From: Macrostomum lignano
Lineage: Eukaryota
Direction: 5' to 3'
Assembly (NCBI GenBank): GCA_002269645.1
Contig: NIVC01000109.1
Span: 372,001 to 436,000, forward strand
Length of the DNA: 64,000 bases
In this document: positions 2,783 to 31,157 of the stretch, piece by piece
Position numbering within the stretch: the stretch's first letter is position 1
Layout: the number at the start of each line of letters is the position of its first letter
The notes under the pieces: generated by a model
Told to the model about the DNA's origin: nothing
What the model saw: the letters and a program-made list of their open reading frames with translations, nothing else
The model's database searches: none
Translations under genes and position numbers: made by a program

Positions 2783-5367
2783 TCAACTTGACCGCGCTCT
2801 CTTCAGAGAAGTCCCAGATTCTGCAAAAACCCGAGAGTTTATTGAGTGAAAGAATAAATATTCGAGCACAAAATGATTAATTTTAGACGTTCTCAAATGC
2901 ACAAGAACGTACGTGAAGGTATTCCGGGGTTCCCCTTGGAGCTGTTGGCCTGATCTCTTACGAAATTAATGCTGAGCTCTTCACTCTTCCATTCGTGGCT
3001 GTGGACAACAACCGAACATTTTTGCCGCTCACTGACATTTGCATATCTCCAATCGGGAGTCCTCACCTGAAGTAGGTGCTGAAGATCAAACGTGTCAAGA
3101 CCATTTCAAAAGTCAGCTACTTCTTGACCTGACAGCATTAACTGGCATATTAAAATGCACGTGAGGGCATTTAAAACTATACAACTTTAGGATGGTGCAA
3201 ACGCTACATCCTCATTGAATAGGCAGGCCAAATTTCATTTCTGTACTTTCTACGAACGTAGATCCGGGAAGCCCATTACCTTTTTAACAGCATCGACATC
3301 GACCACGAACTCAGTTCGGTCTCTCGTGAGTTCATTGATGACTGTGAAATGTACCTTTATGTCACTCTTCTGAATTCCTGAAATTCAAATAGTATGTGTT
3401 AGCAGCATATGTATTTAGCGTGATTAATTCAGTTGAAAATTTGTTTTTAAATATAGTGTTTAAACCGAGCGCACCTGTTGTAGGGGTCCTGGTGTGGATC
3501 GCCAGCATGCTGCCGCCCTTCTTTGGCACTTCCGCTGGGTTCAGACAATCGACCTGTACAGTCTTATTTTCCTCTGAAAAGGATGAAACGCATTGACAAA
3601 TGACCATTATTGACTGAGAGTTCAGAACGAAACTGAGACACTCACTCTCACTGACGATCGGGTCGCTAAACACAGTGCTCAGCTGCCCTTCTCTACCAAA
3701 GAAATCGACGAATGAGAGCGAGAACGCCAGTCGAATGCGACCAAAGTTTTTGGTTGTGTATTGAGTTGACGGAGCTGTGGGACCTGAAACAGCGCCAAGT
3801 TTGTACGTAGTAAGCTTCTTTAACTCAGACTTTAACAGCAAAAAACGAGGCAATATGAGAACATATCAGTTTTTAAAGGATCACGAAAAACTGAATTCTC
3901 ACAATCTGGAAGCTGAGGAACATTTCTGCGTCTGGCTTCCATGCCGTCTTCGATGTCTTTCTTGGTCTTCCTGAGGACGCAGATGACAGCCAGTCGCTCA
4001 AAGCTGAAGAGTATAATCATGCATTATCACTACTTTAATTCGAAAATAAAACTCTCTCTGTGCGATTAAATCTGACAATTAATAAATTAAATATTGTCGC
4101 CAACAAATATTGAATTGACCTTTCATGTGTCAGCCATGAATTTTTACTCACGTGATCTCCCATTCACCACCAGAATCTCTCGATGCATCAACAGACTTCT
4201 TCAGCTGGAAATATCCGTTGCTGCAGTGGTCTCCGTGCAGGTAGTACGGATGAGGAGCCTTCTCCTCGGCGCTCACGGTGCACACAGTCAGCTGCAGCTG
4301 CGAGTGCACAGCTGGGTCGATGCCGCTGACGCGAACTCTCACGAAGCTCTTGTTGCCATCGGTGGAGCTCCTGCCGTCTAGCAGGCGGCCAAGTTCGTAG
4401 CTGTTTCTTCTCTGAGACTCGTAGCGAAATCCGTAGAACCGAACCGGCTGCTCTTCGATGGTCAGCGACGGCGGCTGCAGCTCTTTCAGACTGAGGAGCT
4501 GGGGCTCCGCTTGAAGCAGAAAGTCTCTGCCATTCACCTGAGTTGCGTCTGAAGCTGCTACAGTTCCAGAATATTCGCAGTACTCCACTTCACTTGCTAC
4601 GATTTCATTTAGAAACTAAAATCGCATTGACAATTTCGGAAAAATATATTTCACAGAGCGAGAGGTGCAGATAAGATGACTTGATCTAACTGGTGCCTTC
4701 TTCAAAAACTAATGAAGACGAAAATATCCAAAGGACAACTAAAGTAACATGGATATAGGACGCGACACTCACGTTTCCTGGTGAAAAAGTTTTGAAGGCT
4801 AATTTCTATAAATATTTTGCTGAATACTACCGCTTTGCAATTAGCATTTATTTATACTGTTTACAGATTATACACGGCTAATCGAAACCTTTCGGAGAGT
4901 TAGAAATGGAGTTTAAGGTACCTAATTTTAGATAGTAAGGCATACCTTGTTGAAAAAATGGGTTGCCTTTAGACGCGAATGCTATTTTATCTTAAAGGGG
5001 AATAAATTTCGAAGGTCCCAGCGAAAAAAGACATTTCCACGGGCATCCATTCAAAAGTGAAATTGTTGGGAAAGGTGGCCTTTAAAACATTTTTTATAGA
5101 TTTCGAGTGTTGCCTCCTTCTACTTTAGTAGTCCTTGAAATATCCTGGAGTAATGTTACAAAATACGAACGCACTGAAAGTCGCTTCTAGATATTAAATC
5201 TTTTTATAGCATAAAAACTGGGTTTAGAGTCGTGTGCTCACCGCTTGCGTGCTTGTAGCCGCAATCATTGGGTTCCGGTCAGGCTCATGAGGCAACGGAT
5301 ACTTAGCGCTGCCTCCTTCGGACTCATGCTGCCCCAGAGCTGACGAATGAAAGAGCAGCTGTTGCAT
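2783..5367 (-). CDS. Rel/NF-kB-like gene 1 (RHD + IPT, about 383 aa). Exons 5367-5242 (tentative), 4537-4152, 4003-3903, 3783-3646, 3573-3475, 3377-3280, 3078-2913, 2820-2783
   Basis: LTIEEQPVRFYGFRYESQ, PHPYYLHGDHCSNGYF, FERLAVICV, RIRLAFSL...VFSDPI, IPT segments LNPAEVPKKGG / IQKSDIKVHF / HLLQVRTPDW, and end SLKRARSS*. GT-AG phases are consistent throughout; the first exon is uncertain. Confidence 0.85.
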
Positions 5368-6989
5368 TGTGACCTGTAAATTTATCCGGATGGAATGCTA
5401 AACAAGTTAGGGCTCATTTTTCTAGGTAAACGGACTGCTGACATGGAGAAATTTTCGCATCGGCACACAAAATGCAGCCTTGATGTTATGGACCGCACCC
5501 AGAGTGCAGAGTACGTGCAGTCTTTGAATCGCGTGTACTCATGAACACAACTGACAGCATTCAGTCATATCTCAGCATGTATCAAACAGCTCTTCATAAT
5601 TCACTTTTTACTTTTAATTTACTTTACTTTCACATAAAAACTTGTCTGCCTGAACTCTAGCACTGTCCTGACCAGTTTATAAACTAGTGACTGGAATCTT
5701 TTTAATGCTGAACTTGGCAGAAAATTCTCGAGCTCCTACATCACATGAATTAGCTAGAAAAAAATGCGCACATAATATTGTAAATAGGTTAAACTTACCC
5801 ACTTTCGAATTCCAATGCAATCAAATATTTATTAATTGATAGACAGTTGCAAGTTGCAGAAAATCGAATACAATATGCAGTGAGTTGGTATCCAAGCACT
5901 CTGCTGTATTAATGCACTAAAAATGATAGTACCTTGTAAAGACTGTACATAAAGCTTTCTAAATTACACTCAGTGTGCTGAACAGCTCAACCGAGTGCAG
6001 CTTTGCTTTTGGCCAACCAAGGGAAGAGAAGCTTGATTCATACAGACTTAGTCTCTCTCTTTGCTGTCTGCTTACAGATAGATTCAACAAGATTTTAGTT
6101 TAGATGCATTTGTGTTCTTGTACTTTTTGAAGGGTATTATCTTAGCATACATAGAGTTTCATTCTACTCTGTAGGTTTGTAGCTTCTGCACTGTTGAGTG
6201 TAAATGTTCGTGAACTGTACATGTCTGTGACTGTACATGTTGAAAATAATATCTGGCTTTGAGCTCCGGTGCAACACAAACTCGGTGGGCCCTTTTCTAG
6301 CGTCTTGTGTATGGTCTGCCTTTGTAGATGGCAAACGCTTTGGTGCACATCGCCTTCTTGTTTGAACCATTTCTTGTCACCGCAGAGCTCGATCTGTCGT
6401 AGTCATGGCTCTTTCAGGTGACTCATTTAATTAAGGTGACCATGCAGGTGACTCGTTCAGGTGACTTATTTAGTTTAGGTGACCAGGTGACTTGAACGTT
6501 CAGAATATCAGGTGACTCGTTTAGGTAACACATCCCTGAATCATTCCTATGGCAGTCAGATAACTAAAAAATTATTTTGATGATTCCAAAGTCCAAACCC
6601 TATTTCATATGAGTACTTTGCACATACTCATCATTAGGTATGATAGACCAATGCAGATGAAGCGCCTAGGAGACCAACAGGCTCAGAGCAAGTCTTAGCA
6701 AATACGAGGATATGCAAAGTGTAATTGCTCTAAAAGCGGTGAAGAGTGCAAAAACGAGTCAACAGTGAGACTAAGATGTTTTTCCTCGAATTTTGATTGA
6801 ATTTTAAAGCTTCTTATTGGGGTTCATGTTTTAAAATATATGCATCAATACTCATATGCTCGTAACATAAAAAGTTTGAAACAAAAAATGTACATAGTCA
6901 AGGTTGGCAGAGTACATTTAGTTCTACATGCATATCACTCATCACACAGGTTTTTCAACACTATAGCTTTTTTTCTTTTTAAAAGGCAA

Positions 6990-9127
6990 TCACTTTTGCA
7001 AAGGCCTTTTCAGAGCGCGGGAACCTAAAATGTAGAAAGGCGATGGGAGACTGTCAGGTTGCTCAGAAATGGTATAGTCCCAGCTTATTACGAGCGTAAA
7101 AGCGTTATATCTACCTTGAATTTGCTCTTGCATCGACGTCTTAACCAAAATGATATTTATCTCTTCACTTTCGAATCCATTGCTACAGACGGTGACGGAG
7201 CATTTCTGGCGGTCACTGACAGACGCTTGGCTCATGTCAGGTGCCGTGACCAAGAGGATATGCTGAGGGCAGATCATGTACTCATGTCAGAAAATCAAAT
7301 TGAATTATCAATTGGAGATCTTCTTCTGATCAACGCACTTTTGTATTACCTTCTTCATTACGTCCACGTCACGAACATAAACAGCTTTCTGTTTCGTGTC
7401 AACATTGGTGACAATAAAGTGCACTTTCACATCCCTCATCGGGATACCTGTGGTAGGGTTGCTTGAATGAATGGCAATCATACACCTGCCCTTAATCGGC
7501 ACTTCCACTGGATTCAGAGAGGTGATTTCAATGTTCTTCTTTTCCTCTGGAGAGCAACTGTGTGGAATGTGTTACAGGCGCTACATTAGCAAAATGGAAG
7601 ACCAGCAAGATACTTACTGGCACTGCTGATCTTGTCGCTAAACTCAGGGTTGTTCAGCTGCCAGTTCTGACCGTTTGTATCAGTGAACTCGAGACAGAAA
7701 ACCAATCGAATTTCATTCAATTTGTCTGTGGCGTAGTCTTTACCTGATGTTCGAAAACATGATCAAATAACAGCTTCCCTTAGCATAAACCAGATGCTGC
7801 AGAGTGCTCAAAATTTGACTAATTGTGAGCATATTGCATAATATAAAGCTTTTACTTACAGTGTAGAAAAGCAGGCAAGTTATTGCGTCTCGCTTCCATG
7901 TCCATCTCGGAGTTTTTGTTCTTTTGCTTGGTCACGCGGATGACTGCCAGCCTGTCAAAGCTGATTATAAAAGGTCGAAGGTGCCGAATTCTGTTCTGCT
8001 GAAAAAAATTATCGATAGCAATCCAAGGGGTATTTACCTAACATCCCAGAAATCTTTGCTAGTGACAGACTTATTCAGCTGAAAATATCCGTTGCTGCAG
8101 TGGTCTCCGTGCAGGTAGTACGGATGAGGAGCATTCTCCTCGGCGCTCACGGTGCACACAGTCAGCTGCAGCTGCGAGTGCACAGCTGGGTTGATGTCGC
8201 TGACGCGAACTCTCATGAAGCTCTTGTTGCCATCGGTGGAGCTCCTGCCGAGCAGCAGGCCGCCAACTCTGCCGCTGTCCTTCTCGATCTCCGACTCGTA
8301 GCGAAATCGGTAGAACCGAGCCGGCTGCTCCTCGATGGTCAGCGTTGGAATTTGCACATCGGCGGGCTGGTCGAGTGCATCAAGGAGATGCACGGATTCG
8401 CTGCCGCTGAGTAGCTCGACTCCCGGCTGCAAGTTTGGCTTGAGTTGATGAATTTAAACAAAGACGATTTCACACTTTTCACAGAAACGCATGCATAATG
8501 GTCAAATTGGCAAAATCTTTATATGCTCTAGGGTGGATAAACATTCCCTTTTAAATGAGATGAATTATTATAGAGTCGGTAAAACCTGCTCTCTGAAGTC
8601 ATTAATTTAAGATTAATGTAAAGATTTAGGGGGTGTCATTTTGGCAGAAAAACTCTATTTACACTTCTGCCCTGTCTGTATTCAATTAAGTACAGCAGTG
8701 TAGCTAAAAAAAACTGTAGATTCACGGGAAAACCGTGTGATTGCCGCGGACTTTCCATCTAGCTTTAAAAGTTGTTGAGATTGATACGCTTGTAGGCTCG
8801 TATTCAACTTAAATGTGGATAATTTCTGTTGTTCGATTGTGTGACAGTCCGAATCCCAAGATCAAAGCACTTCGGCGTCACTTAAGTATCACCGATGAGA
8901 TTTTAGCGCCAATTAAGATTCACTAATGAGATTCATATCACTAATGAGTCAGCGCCCATTAAGCGTCACCGATAAGCGTTTAGCGCCACGGCAGTGCCTC
9001 CATCTCAATGCCCAATGCCAGCACCTGCTTGCTGCAATGTCCAAATTGAGTCACTTACGAATCCGGCCACCAGTTGATGTGGCTGCAAAGAAGCTGGGGT
9101 CTCACGGAGCTGGACACTGTGAAGCAT
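6990..9127 (-). CDS. Rel/NF-kB-like gene 2 (354 aa). Exons 9127-9059, 8426-8038, 7960-7860, 7743-7618, 7546-7350, 7262-7115, 7024-6990
   Basis: EEQPARFYRFRYESE, HPYYLHGDHCSNG, FDRLAVIRV, EIRLVFCLEF, LNPVEVPIKG, HILLVTAPDM, and end ALKRPLQK*. Exon lengths sum to 1065 nt in frame. Confidence 0.85.
8726..8756. promoter_or_regulatory. Rel-type sites GGGAAAACC (8726-8734) and GGACTTTCC (8748-8756) in intron 1 of Rel-like gene 2
   Basis: Motif match to kB/Dorsal-type consensus; function untested. Confidence 0.35.
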
Positions 9128-9278
9128 GATTTTCAATTTCAACTTGTCAATTTTATTCACTCAACTCGTATCAGTCCGTTCTATCGCCTCTGTCGTACTG
9201 TACACCAGTTTCAGGCATACAAGATCTTATGAATATACCGCACAATCTCTCTGGGGGGCTAATCCGTGGCCAGCCCGT

Positions 9279-9383
9279 GGGAATTCCGCAAAGCAAGCAA
9301 GAGTTATTGTACACTCCACGTGTCTTCATTGTTAGTTTAGTACATATAATTAAAAGTAGAACTACCAAGAGGGGGGGATTCCC
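9279..9383. promoter_or_regulatory. kB-like sites GGGAATTCC (9279-9287) and GGGGATTCCC (9374-9383) upstream of Rel-like gene 2
   Basis: GGGGATTCCC is a full match to GGGRNWYYCC; the two sites lie 150-260 bp upstream of the predicted ATG. Confidence 0.4.
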
Positions 9384-9450
9384 GCCTCCCCTGACAATTT
9401 GTTTTCTGCGCCGTATTGGAGCAACGCTTGCACAGGGAATTTAAGAAAAC

Positions 9451-10039
9451 GGGCTTAATATTTGTTGTGCACCTTCTCAAACAAGAATTAAGTCGCCAGC
9501 CCTCCGGACCGTCGAAATATATGACGGTTCTGCCAGAAGGTCGGATTTTTCCCATTAGCGCCAGCGTATTCAGTACACCCTCTGCGTCAGCTCTGACTAT
9601 GAACAACCTGATACTAATTTCTCGAGTTTCGCTGATCAAGCCTCGACAGTGGGCAAGCCTCAATTGCTGGACATCCTCAGCTAGTCTCTCGAGCATTCCG
9701 TCATCACCCGGACGCCGTCGGCACCTTGAACAGATTACACCAGGCGACTGTGGACATGCAGTTGATGCAGTTTATGGACATGGAGCCACCTGCTGAAGGT
9801 CCAGAAGCTCTGTCTGGGTGAAGGCCAGTGATCAAGAAAGCCGGAGCTGATGCAAGCACATGTGGTCGACGTGCTGATGAAATTTGGAGGCTTGGCAAGG
9901 CTGCACTGAGGCGCTGCTGATTGGCACACAGGGCTGAACTGAATACACTGGTAGAATCGTCGAATACACCCACGGTCTGGGGGGCTGGCGACTTACATGT
10001 AATTCTTGTTTGAGAAGTTGCGCAACAAAAATTTAGCCC
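9451..10039. repeat. Imperfect inverted repeat; arms about 9451-9590 and 9920-10039
   Basis: gggcttaatatttgttgtgcaccttctcaaacaagaattaagtcgccagccc on + matches gggctaaatttttgttgcgcaacttctcaaacaagaattacatgtaagtcgccagccc on -. Confidence 0.7.
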
Positions 10040-10206
10040 ATGTTGCATTCCAGCTTGTGTCATGCCTTTGATGAAGTTTTCCTTTTGGTTGAACAGAACC
10101 ATTGAAGCTGTAGTAAAATTGAACTGGCGTATGCTTGACTTGGCTTATTTTAGCTTGTATTGGTAAACTCTTATTACTTCATCTTTCCTCATTAGGATTT
10201 TCCAAA

Positions 10207-10665
10207 GAATCATCATTATGATCTCCCAGCATCATCATTTTGATCTCCCAGCATCATCATTGGGATCTCCCAGCATCATCATTATGATCCCCCAGCATCA
10301 TCATTATGATCCCCCAGCATCATCATTATGATCTCTCAGTGTTTTCAATGGGATCTCCCAGCATCATCAATGGGATCTCCCAGCATCATCATTATGATCT
10401 CTCAGCATCATCATTATGATCTCCCAGCATCATCATTTTGATCTCCCAGCATCATCATTGGGATCTCCCAGCATCATCATTGGGATCTCCCAGCATCATT
10501 ATTGGGATCTCCCAGCATCATCATTATGATCTCTCAGCATCATCATTATGATCTCCCAGCATCATCATTGGGATCTCCCAGCATCATTATTGGGATCTCC
10601 CAGCATCATTATTGAGATCTCCCAGCATCATCATTTTGATCTCTCAGTGTCTTCATCGAGATCTC
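10207..10665. repeat. 22-bp minisatellite (atcatcattatgatctcccagc)
   Basis: Visible tandem units. Confidence 0.9.
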
Positions 10666-11099
10666 CAGGATTTTTTCCAGCATCACCAAAGCGCATTTTT
10701 CAGCATCATCTCAATTGAATTTCTGTAAGTACCTTAGATGATGACCTTAGAAGATGAGTACCTTAGTTATCAAAGAAAAGAATCGTTGATGTCGATATTC
10801 AATTTCAATTTTATATATTTGTGAGAATAGGCAAAAACATTTCCGATTAACACTCTCCTGTAGCATAAGACTGCAATCTTTACAATGCTGTAAACAATCA
10901 CACAGAAAATTCTGGAACATAACTGTTACGTTCTTTCTGATATAATAAATAATTCAAAATTAATACACCTGTTAATAATAAAAATATTACTCGGTAAAAC
11001 CATGCAATTTTACCATGACTTCGAATAAGATTCAGTCAGAACTAGAAATCTGCAGAGGAGTTGTTAGAAAATAAAATTTATTAAACTTATTCCAGATTG

Positions 11100-14000
11100 T
11101 CAAGTTTGCTGCCGAGGTCTTTTGCGCGAGTTTCGCGTGTCTGAAAGCGGGTTTTGGAGTAAATAATATCATCTTTATTGATCTTAGATTTTTTGATATT
11201 TTGATTTCATGAACGTAAATCCCGATTCCCCAATAAAAAATTCCTCAATCCCAGATTCCTCAATCCCAGATTCCTCAATCCCAGATTCCTCAATCCCAGA
11301 TTCCCCAATCCCCAGATTCCCCAATCCCAGATTTCCCACTACCAGATTCCCCAATCCAAGATTCCCCAATCCCAGATTCCCCAATCCCAGATTCCTCAAT
11401 CCCAGATTCCTCAATCCCAGATTCCTCAATCCCAGATTCCCCAATCCCAGATTCCTCAATCCCAGATTCCTCAATCCCAGATTCCCCAATCCCAGATTCC
11501 TCAATCCCAGATTCCTCAATCCCAGATTCCCCAATCCCAGATTCCCCAATCCCTGATTCCCCAATCCCAGATTCCCCAATCCCAGATTCCCCAATCCCAG
11601 ACTCCCCAATCCCAGATTCCCCAATCCCAGATTCCCCAATCCCAGATTCCCCAATCCCAGATTCCCCAATTCCAGATTCCCCCAATCCCGGATTCCCCAA
11701 TCCCAGATTTCCCAGTCCTATATGCCCCAAATCTCTAATTCCCTATCACAAATTCCCCAAAGCTGGATTTCATGCTCCCCAATTTATTCTAATCCCACAT
11801 GCCGCATCACCTGCAGAGCCGACATTGCCGCACTCTTTGCCAAAGAAGACAATTTCCAAATCTTCGCTTTCGAACCCGTTGCTTCGAACTGTCAACCGGC
11901 ATTTCAGCCGGTCATTTCTGGTGATGGAAGTCATGTCCGGCGTTCTCACAACCAGCAGATGCTGCAATTAATCATTTAGAAACGATGAAGGTCATATTAT
12001 AATCAGACAGCTTATCGCAAAATATCTCTGAGAAAATAAAACTTGCCTTTTTCAGTTCTACAATCGAACACGAACGAACAAAGTTACGAAGTGAACCCGT
12101 CGATTCAGCAGATGCAGATCCGGCACTTGATTGGCCGTGTAATGTTTGCAGATCAACTTTTATGTCGTTTTTGTTGATTCCTGAAGTATTTTTACACTTA
12201 CTATGTATAAATCTGTTGGTGGGTGCCTGTGCAGTGAGGTGCGTGTCGGTGGAGTGAGGTGGGTGTGGGTGGAGTGAGGTGGGTGTGGGTGGAGTGAGGT
12301 GGGTGTGGGTGGAGTGAGGTTGGTGTCGGTGAAGTGAGGTGGGTGTCGGTGGAGTGAGGTGGGTGTCGGTGGAGTGAGGTGGGTGTGGGTGGAGTGAGGT
12401 GGGTGTCGGTGGAGTGAGGTGGGTGTCGGTGGAGTGAGGTGGGTGTGGGTGGAGTGAGGTGGGTATCGGTGGAGTGAGGTGGGTGTCTGTGGAGTGAGTT
12501 GGTGTTGGTGGAGTGAGGTGGGTGACGGTGGAGTGAGGTGGATGCCGGTGGAGTGAGGTGGGTGCCTGTGGAGTGAGGTGGGTGTCGGTGGAGTGAGGTG
12601 TGTGTGAGTGGAGTGAGTTGGTGTTGGTGGAGTGAGGTGGGTGTTAGTGGAGTGAGGTTGGTGTGGGTGGAGTGAGGTTGGTGTGGGTGGAGTGAGGTTG
12701 GTGTGGGTGGAGTGAGGTGTCGGTGGAGTGAGGTTGGTTTCGGTGGAGTGAGGTTGATGTCGGTGGAGTGAGTTGGTTTTGGTGGAGTGAGGTGGGTGTC
12801 GGTGGAGTGAGGTGGGTGTCGGTGGAGTGAGGTGGGTGTCGGTGGAGTGAGTTGGGTGCAGGTGTCTTTAGACTGAGATGGGTGCCTTTGGGGAAAGCAG
12901 ACGTCTGTAGTAAAGTAACCAATCAATAAATCAATCTACCTGTCGTTGGCGTCTTGGTCAGAATGGCCACCAGACTGCCACCAGTCAGGGGCACCTCTGC
13001 CGGATTCAAGCGCTCAACCGCGATGGATTTCTTCTGTTCTGAATGGTGAATTTTTCAATTAATAGGTAATAAATTAAATCAGATATTTTGTAAAAACTTT
13101 GAAATTTTCCCGTAAGTCTTAGCATATACTTGAACATAGATTCCGAGTTCTACATTCCGAATTCCAGATAACAAGCTCCAGATCCCAAATCTCACATTTA
13201 GAAACACAGATCCCGAATCCCAGATCCCGAATCCCAGATCCCGAATCCCAGATCCCGAACCCCAGAATCCCAGATCCCGAACCCCAGAATCCCAGATCCC
13301 GAACTTTAGATCTTGCATCCTAAATCTCGAATCCCAGATCCCGAATCCTAAATCTCGAATCCCAGATCCCGAATCCCAGATCCCGAATCCCAGATCCCGA
13401 ACCCCAGAATCCCAGATCCCGAATCCCAGATCCCGAACCCCAGAATCCCAGATCCCGAACTTTAGATCTTGCATCCCAAATCTCGAATCCCAGATCCCGA
13501 ATCCTAAATCTCGAATCCCAGATCCCGAACCCCAGATCTTGCATCCCAAATCTTGAATCCCAGTTCCCGAATCCCATATCCTGAATCCCAGATCTCGAAT
13601 CCCAGATCCTGAATCCAAGATCCCGAATCCAACATATGAGTCCTAGACTTCGAATTCTACGAGCGTAGATACCGAGTCCCAGATCCATAAATCCCAATTA
13701 CCAAATCCCAAATCCCAAATCACTTAAATTTAACCCCAGACCAGCAATGAGTCACAGACCATCTTGAACTTACTGTCATCATTAATAGGATCACTGTACA
13801 CCGTGCTCTGCCACCAGTGCATGCCTCTGGTGTCCGTGAATTGCAATGAAATTGCCAGCCGAATCGAACCCATGCTGCGGCTGGTGTATTCCACTTTGGA
13901 ACTTTCCACTGCTGCACACAAAGTCAAATGCGAGTTTTTAATATAGTAAAAAAAAGTGGCAACATTACTTAAAGTAGTACAATAATAATAGTACTAATAG

Positions 14001-16731
14001 ACTCACCATCAGGCAGACTGGGGACATTTGCGCGCCTCAGCTCCACTGCTCTCTCAATGTCCTTCTGACTTTTCCTGGTCACGCAGATCACGGCCAGGCG
14101 GTTGAAGCTGCATTGGTGTTGGGGGGGGGGTCTTGCGAATGCGATATGTAGCTGATGGCTATGATAGTGCTTCGGGATTGGCTTTGAGATTGGCTTTGAG
14201 ATTGGCTTTGAGATTGGCTTTGAGATTAGCTTTGAGATTGGCTTTGAGATTGGCTTTGAGATTGGCTTCGGGATTGGCTTTGAGATTGGCCTTGAGATTG
14301 GCTTTGAGATTGGCTTTGAGATGATTGGCATTGAGATTGGCTTTGAGATTGTTTTAGGGATTGGCTTTGAGATTGGCTTTGTGATTGGCTTTGAGATTGG
14401 CTTTGAGATGATTGGCATTGAGATTGGCTTTGAAATTGTTTTAGGGATTGGCTTTGAGATTGGCTTTGTGATTGGCTTTGAGATTGGCTTTGAGATTAGC
14501 TTTGAGATTGGCTTTGAGATTGGCTTTGAGATTGGCTTCGGGATTGGCTTTGAGATTGGCCTTGAGATTGGCTTTGAGATTGGCTTTGAGATGATTGGCA
14601 TTGAGATTGGCTTTGAGATTGGCTTTGAGATTGGCTTTGTGATTGGCTTTTAGATTGGTTATGTGATTGGCTTTTAGATTGGTTATGTGATTGGCTTTTA
14701 GATTGGTTTTGAGATTGGCTTTGAGATTGGCTTTGAGATTGGCTTTAACATTGGCTTTGAGATTGGCTTTGAGATTGGCTTTAAGGTTGGCTTTAACATT
14801 GGCTTTGAGATTGGCTTTGAGATTGGCTATGAGATTGGCTTTGAGATTGGCTTTGAGATTGGCTTTGAGATTGGCTTTGAGATTGGCTTTGAGATTGGCT
14901 TTGAGATTGGCTTTGAGATTGGCTTTGAGGTTGGCTTTGAGATTGGCTTTGAGATGATTGGCATTGAGATTGGCTTTGAGATTGGCTTTGAAATTGTTTT
15001 TGGGATTGGCTTTGAGATTGGCTTTGTGATTGGCTTTGAGATTGGCTTTGAGATTAGCTTTGAGATTGGCTTTGAGATTGGCTTTGAGATTGGCTTCGGG
15101 ATTGGCTTTGAGATTGGCTTTGAGATTGGCTTTGAGATTGGCTTTGAGATGATTGGCATTGAGATTGGCTTTGAGATTGGCTTTGAAATTGTTTTTGGGA
15201 TTGGCTTTGAGATTGGCTTTGAGATTGGCTTTGAGATTGGCTTCGGGATTGGCTTTGAGATTGGCTTTGAGATTGGCTTTGTGATTGGCTTTTAGATTGG
15301 TTATGTGATTGGCTTTTAGATTGGTTATGTGATTGGCTTTTAGATTGGTTTTGAGATTGGCTTTGAGATTGGCTTTGAGATTGGCTTTAACATTGGCTTT
15401 GAGATTGGCTTTGAGATTGGCTTTGAGGTTGGCTTTAACATTGGCTTTGAGATTGGCTTTGAGATTGGCTTTGAGATTGGCTTTGAGATTGGCTTTGAGG
15501 TTGGCTTTAACATTGGCTTTGAGATTGACTTTGAGATTGGCTTTGAGATTGGCTTTGAGATTGGCTTTGAGATTGGCTTTGAGATTGGCTTTGAGATTGG
15601 CTTTGAGATTGGCTTTGAAATTGGCGTTGTGAATTCATCTCAGAGTAACAGCAGATCAAAGGGGGGCCGTAGCCCAGCGGTAGCGCAGCTGCTCTGGTGT
15701 GCCAGCGACCCAGGCTCGATTCCAAGTGCAGTCACATTAATTTGGGGCTAAATTGGAAACTCGGCTTGGCTCTGCTCGTGCAATTAACAGCCTTGAGAGC
15801 CAACCCCCCAAGGCGCAGTGAAGCGTACATGCCTAACGATAAAATAAAGTTAGGGCCGCTGTACACTCCTGTGTGAGTGTGTGCCTGCGTATCCGCGCGC
15901 TTGTATGCCTGCTCAGGGAAGTCGGCGGAATGGGCAGTAATGCCTCTCGCCGGTTGTGTGCCTATGTCGCTTAAAGTGCGCCAGGGTGCACACAACCCCC
16001 CTGCATCTAAAAAATGAAAAAAAACAGCAGATCAATGAAGCTCACGTGATCTCCCATTCACTGCCCCCAATAGCTGAGTCCACGGTCTTCTTCAGCTGGA
16101 AATATCCGTTGCTGCAGTGGTCTCCGTGCAGGTAGTACGGATGAGGAGCCTTCTCCTCGGCGCTCACGGTGCACACAGTCAGCTGCAGCTGCGAGTGCAC
16201 AGCTGGGTCGATGTCGCTGACGCGAACTCTCACGAAGCTCTTGTTGCCATCGGTGGAGCTCCTGCCGAGCAGCAGGCCGCCAACTCTGCCGCTGTCCTTC
16301 TCGATCTCCGACTCGTAGCGAAATCGGTAGAACCGAGCCGGCTGCTCCTCGATGGTCAGCGACGGCGGCTTCGGCAGCGGCTGAGGCTCGTGCAGAACCA
16401 GGATCCGAGGCTGCTCTGGCAGCAGAACGTCCCTGCCAATCAACTGGGTTGTCGTCGCCTGCAGAACGATTTGAGGCTTGATTGAATTTCTGACAGCCAG
16501 AAATGCGTTCGCTTCTTTCTAGTTCATGTCTGTAAACAGCTATTTTGACAGTGAATGCGATTCTGTAATTTGCTTATTCCCACTTAATTATCACTTTCCG
16601 CCTGGGGACTGGGGACTCCACTGGGGTGAAGAAGACTGCAGGATTCTGACCATAGCTGTTTCGGGCTGGTATAGGTGGATCCCAACAGTGATTCGTGCCA
16701 TAAAACTGAAGAACACACAAGATCTTACCAT
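11100..16731 (-). CDS. Rel/NF-kB-like gene 3 (359 aa). Exons 16731-16729 (ATG only, tentative), 16458-16046, 14107-14007, 13911-13774, 13038-12940, 12180-12047 (GC donor), 11961-11811, 11140-11100
   Basis: EEQPARFYRFRYESE, FNRLAVICV, SIRLAISLQF...YSDPI, LNPAEVPLTGG, HLLVVRTPDM, and end NSRKRPRQQT* followed by AATAAA. Phases are consistent (1080 nt). Confidence 0.85.
11232..11715. repeat. 15-bp minisatellite (cccagattccycaat) in the last intron of Rel-like 3
   Basis: Tandem units; source of the spurious GESGI/LGNLG ORFs. Confidence 0.92.
12230..12860. repeat. 20-bp G-rich minisatellite (ggtggagtgaggtgggtgtc)
   Basis: Tandem units within the Rel-like 3 intron 12181-12939. Confidence 0.92.
13208..13720. 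repeat. 14-bp minisatellite (cccagatcccgaat)
   Basis: Tandem units, intronic. Confidence 0.9.
14168..15625. repeat. 12-bp satellite (gagattggcttt) with a 642-bp higher-order duplication
   Basis: Tandem units; a variant block recurs at 14701 and 15343. Confidence 0.92.
15660..16022 (+). mobile_element. tRNA-derived SINE, about 360 bp, with A-rich tail and 13-bp TSD
   Basis: A box TAGCCCAGCGG and B box GGCTCGATTCC in the head; tail aaaaaatgaaaaaaaa; AACAGCAGATCAA at both 15647-15659 and 16023-16035. Confidence 0.8.
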
Positions 16732-17707: not shown

Positions 17708-17825
17708 ATGCCAATCGGCGCTGAGAACAACTATTTGAGCAACGATGATGGCATGACCTTCGACTGCTGGAAGCCGGTGCTCCGCAACGATTCCGGACGT
17801 GGAGCCGTCGTCCGAACCACCGGCT
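17708..17825 (+). pseudogene. Relic of the FDCWKP family gene
   Basis: DDGMTFDCWKPVLRNDS, then a frameshift within gagccgtcgtccg; lacks the Gly/Ala region and the C-terminus. Confidence 0.65.
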
Positions 17826-18523
17826 GTGTTGACTGCAATGCCAAAAGTCATTTTTGCATCATTTTCAATATGATTAAGCCTCTTTTAAAGATATCCGTTC
17901 GGGGTTTAAGCGCCTTGCATGCCTGCTTGTTTGATCAGTCCGATGGAGATACATTTCAGGCTCGTAGGCTAATGTGTTGTCTCATATTGCTTACCTGTCG
18001 CTTAAGTATTCATAGCAAAATTGTTCGCGTGAAATGATGCAATAAGCGAGACGAACCCAAGTTAAATATATGCATTGCACTTATCTATCTATCTTGTCTT
18101 TAATGAATGTGGCGGATCCACAATTTTTCATTGCCGTAATAGTTTGTAAGTTAATCAAATTCTCTGCCGTTGAAACTGGGGAAGTCAAGTTTCGAGCCTG
18201 CAAAGTTGCCAGATGGAATCGATGCTGGTGTTTCAGAGACACTTTACGACTCATCATGCTCAAATTTAGACATTGGACTAATTGACACGGAGTGGTTGTC
18301 TCTGGAAGTGTTCAAAGCTCAAATGGATAAAGTGAAACCAAACTGAGAAAAAATTCTAGTCTAAAATGTTTGATCGGCTACTGATTTATTCATTAGAAAA
18401 TGTTCAACTTCTTACGAGTAAAGCGCAAACCAATTAAGGAATAAATTTGTAATCAAACAATACGACTAAAAAGTTGCCTATGAAACACCAGCAATCATCA
18501 CTGAGCGGTCAGATGCGTATCAG

Positions 18524-19205
18524 TCAGCACTGCTCAGCGTGAGCAGCCAGCCGACCGCTCCTCAGCCTCACGAAGTCGATGCGGAACCGATCGCCCCACG
18601 AGTTCTCCAGCATCAGCAGCGGCAGCCGCAGGGACGACTCGTCGCCTGCCTTGAAGGTTGACGCCGGCAGCTCGACAACTCCGAGGACGTCGACTCGAGT
18701 CACCCTCGGGTCCGACACGACGTCGCCGAGCGGACGGCCGGACGACGGCTCGACGGAGTCGTCGCGGAGCACCGGCTTCCAGCAGTCGAAAGTCAAGTCT
18801 CCGTCAGCGGCTCCGAGAACAATCCAGCCGACGGGACCGAGGGCCACTGTTGTGGCGGCTGCGCCAGCCGCTGTGGAAGACGCCCCTGCAGCCCCAGCGC
18901 CTCCCAGAGCCGCCCCGATGGCCGCTCCCTCAGCCGCGCCGGCAGCGGCCGCGCCAGTCGCAGCGCCGCCAGCGATTCCAGAGGCGGCCGACGCCGCTCC
19001 ACCAGCGATCGGGGCCGCGGCGCCACCCGTGGCGACAACCGCTCCGATGGCAGCAGCAGTGCCGAGAACCATGGCTGTAGCTTGGCTGAAGAACTTTAAA
19101 TCCTTTTCTGGAAGCTCTGAAGCTGTCTTGAAAGAAATTTTCAACTCACTCTGCCCTATTTATGCTGCTGCTGCTGCCAGTTGTTCCTTGTAGGTCATTC
19201 AGCAT
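18524..19205 (-). CDS. Unknown Gly/Ala-zipper + GPxGW-FDCWKP protein, copy 1. Exons 19205-19150 and 19085-18524
   Basis: ATG CTG AAT...GCA GA|gtgagt and ttcttcag|C CAA GCT join in frame across a 64-nt intron; GC-rich; clear paralogy with copies 2 and 3. Confidence 0.8.
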
Positions 19206-19572: not shown

Positions 19573-20139
19573 ATGCTGATCATCGGAGCACTCAGCGGAG
19601 CCTGGCTCACCTCGGGAGCGGCCAGCGCGGCCCTGGTGGGACTGGCGACGGGCGCCGGTCTGGGCGCCGGGGCGCAGCTGGCCGGCTCGGGAGCCGCCGG
19701 AGCCGCCGGCGCAGCGGCCGGGGCCGCCTCGGCTGCGGCCATCCTCGGAGCGGCCATCGGAGGCGACGTCTCGTCGGCGGTGGCGGGCGGCGCGGCGTCG
19801 CTGCCGGCCTCCTGGGCGGTGGCATCGCCGGCGCTGATGTCGGGCCCGCTCGGTTGGTTGCTGGTCGGCTGCTCGACCGACACCGCCGCAGCCGCCGCAG
19901 GTTCAGTCAGCTTCGACTGTTGGAAGCCGCTGGTGCGCGACCTCTCGGCCGAGCCGTCAGCCGGCCGGCTGCTGCGGGACCTCGCCGCCGACCCGAGGAT
20001 CGCCGAGGTGGCCGTCAGGGCTGTCGGAGCGTCGCCGCAGATCCGCCTGCGCAACGTCTGGGGCGAGGCGTTCGGCCTGCGACTCATCGAGCTGCCTGGC
20101 AGTCGGGTGGCGGCGCACGCCGAGCCGTTGCTGGAGTGA
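19573..20139 (+). CDS. Unknown Gly/Ala-zipper + GPxGW-FDCWKP protein, copy 2 (5' end uncertain)
   Basis: 188-aa ORF containing GPLGWLLVG...SFDCWKPLVRDLSAEPSAGRLLRDLAADPRI...RVAAHAE. Confidence 0.8.
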   Translation: MLIIGALSGAWLTSGAASAALVGLATGAGLGAGAQLAGSGAAGAAGAAAGAASAAAILGAAIGGDVSSAVAGGAASLPASWAVASPALMSGPLGWLLVGCSTDTAAAAAGSVSFDCWKPLVRDLSAEPSAGRLLRDLAADPRIAEVAVRAVGASPQIRLRNVWGEAFGLRLIELPGSRVAAHAEPLLE

Positions 20140-20345: not shown

Positions 20346-20991
20346 CCAAGCGGGTTTAACCATGGTGGCTGCCACTGCCGTTGCTGTCGGAGCCATCGTT
20401 GCCACAGGTGGCGCCGCTGCGGCAGCTGGAGCCGGTGCGGCCACTGCTAGCGGAGGAATCGGAGCAGGTGCGTCAGTTGCAGGGGCGTCAGCTGCAGCTT
20501 CCACCGCAGGAAGCACGGCTGCTGGCATTGCGAGCGGTGCGCTGACAGGCGCTGCCGCTGCTGGAACTCTTGAAGGAGCGGCCGTAGGGGCCGCTGTGGG
20601 AGGCGCTGGCGCTGCCGGCGTGTCCTCGAGTGCAGCTGGCGCAGCCGGGGCTGCCACAGCAGGCGGACTGGCCCTCGGTCCGGTCGGCTGGATCGTTCTC
20701 GGAGCCGCTGACGGAGACTTGACTTTCGACTGCTGGAAGCCGGTGCTCCGCGACGACTCCGTCGAGCCGTCGTCCGGCCGTCCGCTCGGCGACGTCGTGT
20801 CGGACCCGAGGGTGACTCGAGTCGACGTCCTCGGAGTTGTCGAGCTGCCGGCGTCAACCGTCAAGGGAGGCGACGAGTCGTCCCTGCAGCTGCCGCTGCT
20901 GATGCTGGAGAACTCGTGGGGCGATCGGTTCCGCATCAACTTCGTGAGGCTGATGAGCGGTCGGCTGGCTGCTCACGCTGAGCAGTGCTGA
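20346..20991 (+). CDS. Unknown Gly/Ala-zipper + GPxGW-FDCWKP protein, copy 3 (acceptor at 20345, ATG at 20362)
   Basis: 209-aa ORF; same acceptor context (cag|ccaagc) as copy 1; C-terminal half nearly identical to copy 1. Confidence 0.8.
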
Positions 20992-29701: not shown

Positions 29702-31157
29702 TCATTCCACACAGAAGTCAGCAGTAGCAGCTCTAGTCAGCTGCACTTCGCAATTGAACTCGGCGCTAAAAGAATCTAAAAACTCTGGCAACACCGACTC
29801 CACTGACACGTCGCGGCCCAGCTCGTTGGTTAGCGAGGTCACGGACTTGCCTAGCAGGCCGCAGGGAACGATATGTTGGAACCAGGCCAGGTCTACGTTG
29901 CAATTGATGGCCACACCGTGCGAGGTGAGGTAATTGGCCGCGTGAACTCCTAGTGCTGCTACCTGAGGATTGGGGAGTGGCATCATGGGAACTGGGAATC
30001 ATCTCAATAGCTAAGTATCAGGCAGAATCGAGGATCAGGGGGAATCGAGGGTCAGGGGGAATTGAGGGTCAGGGGGGATTGAGGGTCAGGGGGGATCGAG
30101 GATCAGGGGGAATCTAGGGTCAGGGGGAATCGAGGGTCAGGGGGAATCGAGGGTCAGGGGGAATCTAGGGTCAGGGGGTATCGAGGGTCAGGGGGAATCG
30201 AGGGTCAGGGGGAATCCAGGGTTAGGGAAGAATCGAAGGTTAGGGAAGAATCGAAGATCAGGGAGAATCGAGGGTTAGAGAAGAATTGAAGGTCAGGGAG
30301 AATCGATGGTTAGGGAGAATCGAAGGTCAGGGAGAATCGAGGGTTAGGGAAGAATCGAAGGTTAGGGAAGAATCGAGGGTTAGGGAAGAATCGAAGGTCA
30401 GGGAGAATCGAGGGTTAGGGAAGAATCGAAGGTCAGGGAGAATCGAAGGTCAGGAAGAATCGAGGGTTAGGGAAGAATTGAAGGTCATGGAGAATCGAGG
30501 GTTAGGGAAGAATCGAAGGTCAGGGAGAATCGAAGGTCAGGGAGAATCGAGGGTCAGGCAGATTCTATAATATTAGGAAGCTGTGATCGTGGTGAATCTA
30601 ATCTAGAGACAATGGGAAGTCAAAGAAAGAGGGTCCAAATACAGAAAAGTGAAAGCAGCAAAATAAAAACTACAACCACAGCTCACCTTCCGGTCGGCAA
30701 TCCACACGCCCACATCCTCAGTAGTGCGCGCGTCCCCAAGCCCGTAGCCCCTGGCGCACAGATCCACAACAGTTCGCTGCAGCCGACACACGTAGTCCCT
30801 GAGACTGCGGCCGTGGTTCCTCAGGTCCAGCATCGGGTAGGCCACCAGCTGGCCGGGCCCGTGGAATGTCAGCAGGCCGCCGCGGTCGGCGCGATGAAAC
30901 TCGGCGCCAATTGAGCGCAGCCGAGCCGCCAGCTGGTCGGTGTCGCCGTCGGCCGAATTTGCCGGATCGACGCCGCGAATGCCGACGGTGTACACTGGGC
31001 GATGCTCGAGCAATAGCAGACAGTCTGCTTTCAGGGGCCGACTGCGCAGCAAAGCTGAGTGAAAGCGTTGCAATAATAGGCCTTCCTTGTAGCTGAGGCG
31101 GCCGTGCCAGATGGCCCGGATCAGCCTCCTGGGACTGGGGCCAGCAGCAGCTGACAT
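29702..31157 (-). CDS. LIPT2: Mitochondrial octanoyltransferase (LipB-like). Exons 31157-30687 and 29962-29702, 243 aa
   Basis: LLLLEHRPVYTVG, DRGGLLTFHGPGQLVAYP, GVWIADRK|VAALGVH..LTSHGVAINCNVDLAWFQHIVPCG. Confidence 0.93.
30022..30560. repeat. 18-bp purine-rich minisatellite (gggagaatcgagggtcag) in the LIPT2 intron
   Basis: Tandem units. Confidence 0.88.

Follow-up and report, generated by a model that had tools for sequence, protein, structure and literature searches.

Tandemly amplified Rel-type genes of minimal format, with gene conversion confined to one exon, in the flatworm Macrostomum lignano

Three short Rel-homology genes and the array around them

The stretch of DNA considered here (the window) comprises 64,000 nucleotides of the flatworm Macrostomum lignano, positions 372001-436000 of contig NIVC01000109.1 in the Mlig_3_7 assembly. 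It is rich in introns and without long open reading frames (ORFs), as judged by its composition and by a listing of its ORFs. Between positions 2783 and 16731, on the minus strand, lie three intron-containing genes encoding proteins with a Rel homology domain (RHD), called here A, B, and C, and a tblastn search with the whole family as query detects these three RHD genes and no others in the 64 kb. Among the transcription systems of animals, NF-kB/Rel is the central one for immunity and stress. The three genes are arranged head to tail, spaced 1.6-2.7 kb apart. The ORF listing was used only to locate exons, and the models of A, B, and C were spliced by hand. The GenBank record of the locus is the reverse complement of window positions 1100-26731, base for base. 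The genes and their terminal mini-exons are as follows (NLS, nuclear localisation signal).

2783..5367, minus strand: gene A; 8 exons (5367-5242, 4615-4152, 4003-3903, 3783-3646, 3573-3475, 3377-3280, 3078-2913, 2820-2783), 409 amino acids
6990..8426, minus strand: gene B; 6 exons (8426-8038, 7960-7860, 7743-7618, 7546-7350, 7262-7115, 7024-6990), 331 amino acids, no genomic ATG
11100..16731, minus strand: gene C; 8 coding exons (16731-16729, the ATG alone; 16458-16046, 14107-14007, 13911-13774, 13038-12940; 12180-12047, with a GC donor; 11961-11811, 11140-11100), 359 amino acids
2783..2820, minus strand: mini-exon of A, (Q)SGTSLKRARSS-stop, with K-R-A-R; the same in the transcript-derived paralog P0005
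6990..7024, minus strand: mini-exon of B, (G)SRALKRPLQK-stop, a weaker basic motif; the duplicate B' has ...KRPLQE-stop
11100..11140, minus strand: mini-exon of C, (D)TRNSRKRPRQQT-stop, ending ...NSRKRPRQQT-stop; a monopartite NLS-like K-R-P-R, falling in the same alignment column as the KRKR NLS of Dorsal-like proteins

Homologous introns of A, B, and C have the phases 2,1,1,1,0,1 in common. The common exon-phase pattern claimed by the original prediction, which was made from the letters alone, is therefore real, and the end coordinates (2783 and 16731) and terminal peptides that it gave are exact. All splice sites in the hand-built models are canonical, with the exception of one GC donor in gene C. 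In gene B, homologous exons 4 and 5 are joined through precise loss of their intron, and TTGIPMRDVKVHF reads uninterrupted where A and C are split. The model of gene C is 100% identical over 359 amino acids to GenBank BOX15_Mlig011721g1 (P0001), and the annotated span is the same, 5632 bp. Genes A and B have no GenBank annotation, and their reading frames are intact. The ATG exon of gene A (5367-5242) was recovered by way of UniProt A0A1I8II91 (P0002) and the paralogs P0004-P0007, and the C-terminus of its product matches that of P0005. The GC donor of gene C, AAAAAG/gcaagt, belongs to the intron that follows exon 6 (12047-12080, minus strand) and is used by the transcript-based GenBank model. 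A UniProt isoform of gene C (P0003) takes a GT donor 33 nucleotides upstream and so drops VRSCSIVELKK, including the KK before HLL that is conserved throughout the family.

Each protein consists of an N-terminal RHD, an Ig-like (IPT-type) domain in the place where Rel proteins have their dimerisation domain, a short linker, and a terminal basic motif, and there it stops. None of the three has a glycine-rich region. That the first domain is an RHD, as had been predicted, is upheld by the profile hidden Markov model RHD_DNA_bind of Pfam (PF00554), whose curated gathering score of 27 bits is exceeded by all three genes (A, 44.5; B, 59.4; C, 59.3), the matches running from profile position 1 to 166-168 of 169. 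Members of the family match this profile without exception (10/10). The second domain is seen in the predicted structure. In the AlphaFold2 model of C, residues 226-336 form an eight-strand beta-sandwich, with block means of the predicted local distance difference test (pLDDT) of about 80-87 outside a low-confidence insert at 268-282. Over the whole model the mean pLDDT is 67.5, and the recognition loop and both termini are disordered. When this model is used as a Foldseek query, the 30 best matches are without exception Rel/NF-kB chains with both domains (E 6.6e-17 to 6e-12; 17-22% identity over 313-351 aligned columns).

The genes end in similar ways. A terminal mini-exon of 35-41 nucleotides provides the basic motif and the stop codon in each, and the proteins end 3-5 residues past the motif, with no C-terminal transactivation region. 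The motif stands C-terminal to the RHD at the position of the NLS of Rel proteins, in a column that aligns with the Dorsal-like KRKR. It reads RKRPR in C and KRAR in A (K-K/R-x-K/R), and a weaker KRPLQK in B. It had been predicted that translation stops about 12 residues beyond the IPT domain. This is wrong: the stop comes about 21-28 residues, mostly basic or polar, after the Ig-like domain has completed its last beta-strand, and 11-13 residues is the size of the mini-exon.

There are several reasons to trust these ends. The BOX15 gene models come from a genome-guided assembly of RNA-seq data, with gene ends taken from reads containing the spliced leader and poly(A) sites (PMC5730564), and five paralogous models of this set (P0004-P0008) stop at the homologous mini-exon (...KRARPS, ...KRARSS, ...KRARPI, ...LKSLRR), as does that of C. 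The last two exons of A agree almost residue for residue with the C-terminus of P0005, the stop of gene B is conserved in its duplicate B', and AATAAA occurs 18 nucleotides past the stop of gene C. Nor is there any sign of ankyrin repeats. The core motif G-x-T-P-L-H and its variants are found in none of the six frames of the 64 kb (a crude test by regular expression), the Pfam Ank profile does not match the proteins of A, B, or C, and ORFs in the intergenic regions have no match to Pfam domains. The central claim of the prediction, that these proteins lack both ankyrin repeats and a long C-terminal tail, thus stands, for C and the five paralogs by models derived from RNA-seq, for A by homology of its last two exons, and for B by the stop conserved in B'. 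An intramolecular ankyrin inhibitor cannot be part of the regulation of A, B, and C.

The word "trio," on the other hand, understated what is present, since the array runs on past coordinate 1 of the window and contains at least seven genes. The block from 15049 to 2710 is collinear with a second block located just beyond the start of the window (L003, NIVC01000109.1 341403-363910), with about 88% identity that extends through introns and spacers. The second block contains C' (annotated, 359 amino acids), B' (unannotated), A' (annotated as BOX15_Mlig008833g1), and a further A-like gene. The three genes of the window are one unit of this duplicated array. At least four more members of this clade follow one another in tandem on a homeologous contig (L002, NIVC01000475.1 59303-82404), namely P0004, P0006, one that is unannotated, and one similar to P0008. 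Several copies in the arrays are unannotated, and the four genes of the second block lie on the window's own contig, just outside the window.

Gene conversion, class, and reach of the family

The similarity among the three genes forms a mosaic. At the level of DNA, A, B, and C resemble one another solely in the core of their first RHD exon, from which the recognition loop and the first sheet are translated.

16087..16361, minus strand: conversion tract in C, core of the first RHD exon; 98.2% DNA identity to B 8070-8344
8070..8344, minus strand: conversion tract in B; 98.2% identity to C, 91% to A 4191-4467, 97.5% to the exon of A' in the second block
16306..16335, minus strand: recognition loop of C, RFYRFRYESE (RxxRxRxxS-E), with five residues, IEKDS, inserted after it by comparison with Rel proteins
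8289..8318, minus strand: recognition loop of B, RFYRFRYESE, the same as in C
4412..4441, minus strand: recognition loop of A, degenerate, RFYGFRYESQ; middle Arg to Gly, Glu to Gln, and the next loop rewritten and one residue shorter

Within the core, B and C are 98.2% identical over 275 nucleotides, A and B 91%, and A and C 84%. The synonymous divergence (dS) is 0.016 between B and C and 0.085-0.105 in the two comparisons with A, while outside the core, over the other parts of the RHD and over the Ig-like domain, the proportion of synonymous differences (pS) is 0.49-0.84, which is saturated. Amino acid identity behaves likewise, at 82-96% in the core and 39-53% elsewhere. Old paralogs that share one young exon are the mark of gene conversion, confined in this case to the exon of the recognition loop and first sheet. 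The recognition-loop exon has been homogenised by conversion.

Compared to the consensus RxxRxRxxC plus Glu, the loops of B and C possess all three arginines, the tyrosine, and the glutamate, and the cysteine is replaced by serine, a replacement also found in several other invertebrate RHD proteins. Gene A is different. The differences in its core exon cluster in the loop itself, where RFYGFRYESQ-RRNSYELGR stands in place of RFYRFRYESE-IEKDSGRVGG, and an arginine and a glutamate that contact DNA in Rel proteins are gone. Judging from the loss of these two base-contacting residues, the product of gene A probably binds DNA in an altered or weakened manner.

What kind of RHD protein is encoded? 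A profile of the family, searched against PDB, matches RelB at 1.4e-11, p65 at 7e-11, c-Rel at 1.2e-10, and Gambif1, the mosquito homologue of Dorsal, at 4e-7, and matches p50/p105 at 4e-4 to 9e-3. A search of PDB with a single sequence puts RelB at 7.8e-15 and also finds c-Rel, p65, and p52. The segment GRSSTDGNKSF resembles GEHSTDNNKTF of c-Rel, and the GPSHGG-type loop of class I is not in these proteins. A, B, and C are Rel/Dorsal-like by sequence and predicted fold, neither similar to NFAT nor closer to p50. The original prediction called them p50-like, which holds for their architecture and fails for their sequence, since HMMER places them nearer RelB, p65, c-Rel, and Dorsal (1e-11 to 4e-7) than p50/p105 (4e-4 to 9e-3).

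The family is large and apparently private. When 1.84 billion representative proteins were searched with its profile, 231 matched at E<=1e-3. Of these, the 15 at E<=1e-30 belong to the window family or, as far as they were looked up, to M. lignano (the short fragments P0020 and P0022 were not looked up), and P0023, at 1.5e-18, is also from M. lignano. The next matches, at 5e-14 and weaker, are insect Dorsal-like proteins, REL/NF-kB of the squid Euprymna, and unnamed environmental sequences. A profile covering all subfamilies, used in a word-index search for homologues, brought up only M. lignano proteins and one metagenome protein. The proposed lineage-specific expansion is borne out by the 15 strongest matches. 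Neighbour joining of 141 RHD sequences, with no NFAT outgroup, gives a tree in which the clade of the window genes has 100% bootstrap support. All M. lignano RHD sequences form one clade in the same tree with a bootstrap value of just 43%, and their monophyly is not relied upon.

BOX15 contains about 24 RHD gene models of some nine sequence types, all 330-450 amino acids in length, with some redundancy owing to duplication in the assembly. Besides the array described above there are singletons and another tandem cluster, PAA90847-90851, of which PAA91487-91497 and PAA86477-86482 are homeologous copies. The models of this cluster and the singletons (BOX15_Mlig028098, Mlig000125g1/g2, Mlig020664, Mlig027515, Mlig026896, Mlig011617) are like the window genes in that they come from the same species, encode proteins of a similarly short format (340-390 amino acids), and have the NLS in the same position, and unlike them in sequence, with 26-36% identity to gene C. 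Most of the more distant M. lignano paralogs (P0011, P0018, P0019, P0021, P0023, and P0051 are those with tails) have a short acidic/hydrophobic motif 15-45 residues past a KRKR-type NLS, and proteins of the window clade end without one. The tail motifs are VVNMDEFLQIV, DVDLSDLLTSFANQ, LEEDFMAFLSNP, MDELLGTFLD, IGQLFQEVLLD, and DLDMMEISKFMEE, with DLSDLLTSF and EEDFMAFL among the forms they take. The motif recalls the C-terminal TA1 motif of RelA. I found no mention of any of these genes in the literature, and UniProt gives them automatic labels of the sort "RHD domain-containing protein."

Weighing the status of the genes

I propose that A, B, and C are genuine genes, that they belong to a family of very short Rel/Dorsal-type factors which is specific to Macrostomum and has been amplified in tandem, and that they work in the manner described in the next section. 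Taken as a whole, this reading strikes me as probable, and a number of points weigh against it. The Pfam dimerisation profile RHD_dimer (PF16179) falls below threshold in every member of the family: the best is gene A, with E 0.033 and 14.7 bits against the 28.3 required, and none of the 10 other members matches (0/10). Dimerisation therefore rests on a predicted fold, with the mean pLDDT of 67.5 given above, computed from an alignment of 8 sequences. The 5-residue insertion by the recognition loop and the low confidence with which the loop is modelled leave DNA binding unproven, and the loop of A is degenerate. The N-terminal extension of the A-type proteins, which contains FLNEIVASEVEYCEY, could hide an activation function. 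Gene B has no in-frame genomic ATG and no conserved upstream exon that could provide one, and no AATAAA within 400 nucleotides of its stop. The ratio of nonsynonymous to synonymous divergence (dN/dS) between A and A' is 0.62. A and B lack a GenBank model even though the annotation is based on transcripts, so they may be silent or very weakly expressed. Finally, there is no IkB-like gene in the 64-kb window, to which the search for such a partner was limited.

Perhaps then A and B, or one of the two, are nonfunctional duplicates, either unexpressed or decaying, beside a working gene C. The gaps just listed are what one would expect in that case: two genes that escaped an annotation that called C, C', and A', a gene B without a genomic ATG or a nearby AATAAA, and a gene A whose loop has lost an Arg and a Glu and whose dN/dS against A' is 0.62. 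This view has to contend with two reading frames that remain intact over 6-8 exons, with canonical splice sites. It has to contend as well with the comparison of B to B'. In a block about 12% diverged, the two differ at only 27 of 996 coding positions (2.7%), without an indel or a stop codon, and their dN/dS is 0.18, a value that places B-type genes under purifying selection since the duplication. The R-to-G and E-to-Q variant of the loop in gene A is not peculiar to it either, since another copy, P0010, shares it. As for missing annotation, the GenBank set left out weakly expressed transcripts and those that overlap repeats (PMC5730564). A look for expression data turned up nothing, the gene identifiers being absent from the searchable literature and from the supplements of PMC5816591. 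On balance I regard nonfunctionality of A or B as a minority possibility.

The missing start codon of gene B may have its own explanation, which begins with what lies upstream.

8427..8680, minus strand: upstream region of B, ending in the acceptor ...cttgcag/CCG, phase 0; candidate outron with trans-splice acceptor, or promoter

The 250 bp ending in this acceptor are 100% identical in B', compared to about 88% for the duplicated block as a whole, which also argues against decay. In other flatworms the terminal AUG of the spliced leader is documented as an initiator. The spliced leader of M. lignano, CGGTCTCTTACTGCGAAGACTCAATTTATTGCATG, ends in ATG (PMC8629364). If it were trans-spliced to gene B at 8426, then the message would begin ATG-CCG-GGA, in frame and encoding M-P-G-V-E-L, with the junction ...TTGCATG joined to CCGGGAGTC. 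Two more conventional candidates for a start exon do not hold up: one at 8758-8663, whose ATG reads AAG in B', and one at 9127-9059, which is unrelated to any paralog. Most likely the AUG of gene B is supplied by a trans-spliced leader.

A different objection grants that the genes function and questions their lack of an activation domain. A, B, and C might be full activators, more similar to Dorsal or RelA than to p50, with the activation function residing in the N-terminal extension or the short tail. RelB sets a precedent, as a Rel protein with an N-terminal activation region, and in sequence the family stands nearer Rel-class proteins than those of the p50 class. A-type proteins have some 90 residues before the RHD, with an acidic/hydrophobic stretch among them. 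It is difficult to extend the argument to B and C, which have merely 30 or so residues in that position, and the 21-28 residues after the Ig-like domain are mostly basic or polar. Furthermore, the distant paralogs have their own acidic/hydrophobic motif past the NLS, and it is precisely this that the window clade is missing. I would give the idea of full activators a modest chance, well short of even. Two observations on the extension itself (in gene A, 5242-5367 plus 4480-4615, minus strand) may be recorded here. It is absent from B and C, and its acidic/hydrophobic stretch, FLNEIVASEVEYCEY, could be an activation motif. The sequence NPMIAAT, or NP(M/I)IAATS, in the A-type N-terminus was considered as a calcineurin PxIxIT site, fails at the fifth position, and is treated as chance.

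Less still can be said for longer isoforms, in which some transcripts would bypass the mini-exon stop and continue into downstream exons. The extreme example would be the fusion of B with A in UniProt A0A1I8II91 (P0002), which joins B exon 4 to A exon 1. M. lignano does make polycistronic precursor transcripts (PMC5730564), and head-to-tail genes separated by 1.6-2.7 kb would lend themselves to readthrough. However, P0002 is a prediction on an older assembly with the second half of A garbled, and the fusion is evidently an artefact. The transcript-derived models of C and the five paralogs all end at the homologous mini-exon, C has its AATAAA close behind the stop, and no ankyrin motif is available anywhere in the window to be read into. 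Such isoforms are improbable.

That the genes belong to the NFAT family, regulated by calcineurin or tonicity, scarcely deserves belief: RYESE/RYETE in the loop superficially recalls HYETEG of NFAT, and NFAT chains do appear in the Foldseek results (E 1.6e-11 to 3e-9), yet they come below all 30 Rel/NF-kB chains and at 14% identity rather than 17-22%, the family profile finds no NFAT chain in PDB at E<=10 while reaching Rel chains at 1e-11, the GRSSTDGNKSF segment is matched in c-Rel, an NFAT-type loop (R-A-H-Y-E-T-E-G) is absent from the family and from the 150 best representatives, and with just 30-90 residues ahead of the RHD the proteins are without the N-terminal NFAT homology region. The original prediction, which favoured a Rel/NF-kB type over NFAT, was right on this score.

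A possible Rel system, and the rest of the window

How might Rel/Dorsal-type proteins of so short a format work? I suggest that they would enter the nucleus by means of the C-terminal NLS-type motif and bind kappaB-like DNA as homodimers or as heterodimers with other members of the family. Apparently without an activation domain of their own, they might by analogy act as repressive or competing subunits, in the manner of p50 or p52 homodimers, or as partners of the paralogs that bear tails. Conversion keeps the recognition exon of array members nearly identical, and the dimerisation domain is left to diverge together with the remainder of the RHD. Since the recognition exon is kept identical, B and C should share DNA specificity and differ in their choice of partners.

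It helps to compare this format with systems already known. Class II Rel proteins (Dorsal and Dif; RelA, RelB, and c-Rel; molluscan Rel) provide the best matches of A, B, and C in both sequence and fold. They share with them the two-domain RHD, the loop RxxRxRxx(C/S)E, the segment G..S-T-D/E-x-N-K-[ST]-F, an NLS directly past the second domain, and the lack of ankyrin repeats. They differ in size, 450-1000 amino acids against 331-409 with no C-terminal transactivation region. The window proteins are also set apart by a serine in place of the redox-sensitive cysteine, by the 5-residue loop insertion, by a dimerisation domain too diverged for Pfam RHD_dimer, and by their origin in a tandem array subject to gene conversion. 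Mature p50 and p52 have the same architecture, an RHD and an NLS without an activation domain. Their affinity to A, B, and C is weaker (4e-4 to 9e-3, against 1e-11 for Rel), and A, B, and C have neither the GPSHGG loop nor the glycine-rich region nor an ankyrin precursor, their short form being encoded in the genome rather than produced by processing. NF-kB proteins without ankyrin repeats occur naturally in cnidarians such as Nematostella.

Within the flatworms, a survey found no p50/p105 in Platyhelminthes (PMC11432056), and a 2026 study reports that the RHD genes of Schmidtea mediterranea, seven in number, are highly divergent and include no clear NF-kB (PMC13563047). The host is indeed a flatworm, as was suspected, and both papers agree with the suggestion that NF-kB is hard to find in that group. 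The Schmidtea factors and those of M. lignano have in common long branches, the want of a clear NF-kB orthologue, and membership in a phylum without Toll-like receptors. The Schmidtea set is known here by description only, and no protein from outside Macrostomum matches the family profile better than 5e-14. Toll-like receptors are reported absent from M. lignano as well (PMC8609888).

One could go further and imagine that Macrostomum, lacking Toll-like receptors and canonical NF-kB, has rebuilt a Rel system as a combinatorial family of at least about 24 minimal subunits. Conversion would lock one DNA specificity in place and dimerisation domains would diversify. Members without a transactivation domain, the window clade included, would serve as dominant-negative or tuning partners of paralogs with mini TA1-like tails. 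Regulation would be exerted through dimer composition and transcription instead of masking by IkB or ankyrin repeats, and gene B would owe its start codon wholly to the spliced leader. So complete a picture is speculative and, as a whole, I consider it unlikely.

What is new is the format, a minimal Rel type without ankyrin repeats or tail, tandemly amplified and subject to exon-restricted conversion. It is not a new kind of system. The flatworm that possesses this large private set of stripped-down Rel proteins branches early and is genetically tractable, with transgenesis established (PMC5730564), and transcripts support at least one of the window genes. This raises a testable question, namely what role RHD proteins play when an animal is missing the canonical components that act upstream of them and that inhibit them. 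The array also offers a clean natural case of exon-restricted conversion among transcription factors, the exon that contacts DNA homogenised and the domains that contact partners free to diverge. The practical value is modest, a refinement plus hypotheses, as the genes already carry automatic RHD labels.

The surroundings of the array remain to be described. Several introns of gene C (11184-11730, 12201-12926, 13079-13697, and 13969-15632) and the spacer at 10186-10666 contain long minisatellites (GGGATT/CTGGGATTCG, CACCCACCTCACTCCACCGA, and a repeat that translates as PISKPISK). Those in the introns give rise to strong local GC/AT skews and many spurious repetitive ORFs. Directly upstream of gene C are four GC-rich single-exon ORFs, head to head and in tandem (17708-18037, plus strand; 18524-19144, minus; 19573-20139, plus; 20362-20991, plus). 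They have in common a domain of no known kind, ...TFDCWKPVLRDDSVEPSSGRPL...RLAAHAEQC, behind an N-terminus rich in Ala and Gly. Two of them are GenBank genes (188 and 197 amino acids), none has a Pfam match, and together they constitute an uncharacterised gene family of M. lignano. Past gene A, at 954-1820 on the plus strand, an ORF of 288 amino acids shows weak similarity to the tyrosine recombinase family (Pfam Phage_integrase, E 0.021), with ...GDWRSSAVEVYL close to its C-terminus. Probably it is what is left of a mobile element of the Crypton or DIRS type. It lies within a GC-rich stretch (1-2000, 61% GC against about 42% around it), in the spacer between the two duplicated C-B-A units.

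The remaining genes and repeats of the window are these.

30603-31157, minus strand: exon of a lipoyl(octanoyl) transferase (LplA-B_cat, 9e-20)
38362-38946, plus strand: exon of a mitochondrial carrier protein (Mito_carr, 3e-18)
about 48570-62415, plus strand: exons resembling NAD(P) transhydrogenase, as judged by eye
54857-56479: long tandem repeat with a unit of about 75 nucleotides (a repetitive ORF of 540 amino acids)
59174-59632, minus strand: fragment of a mariner-like transposase, as judged by eye

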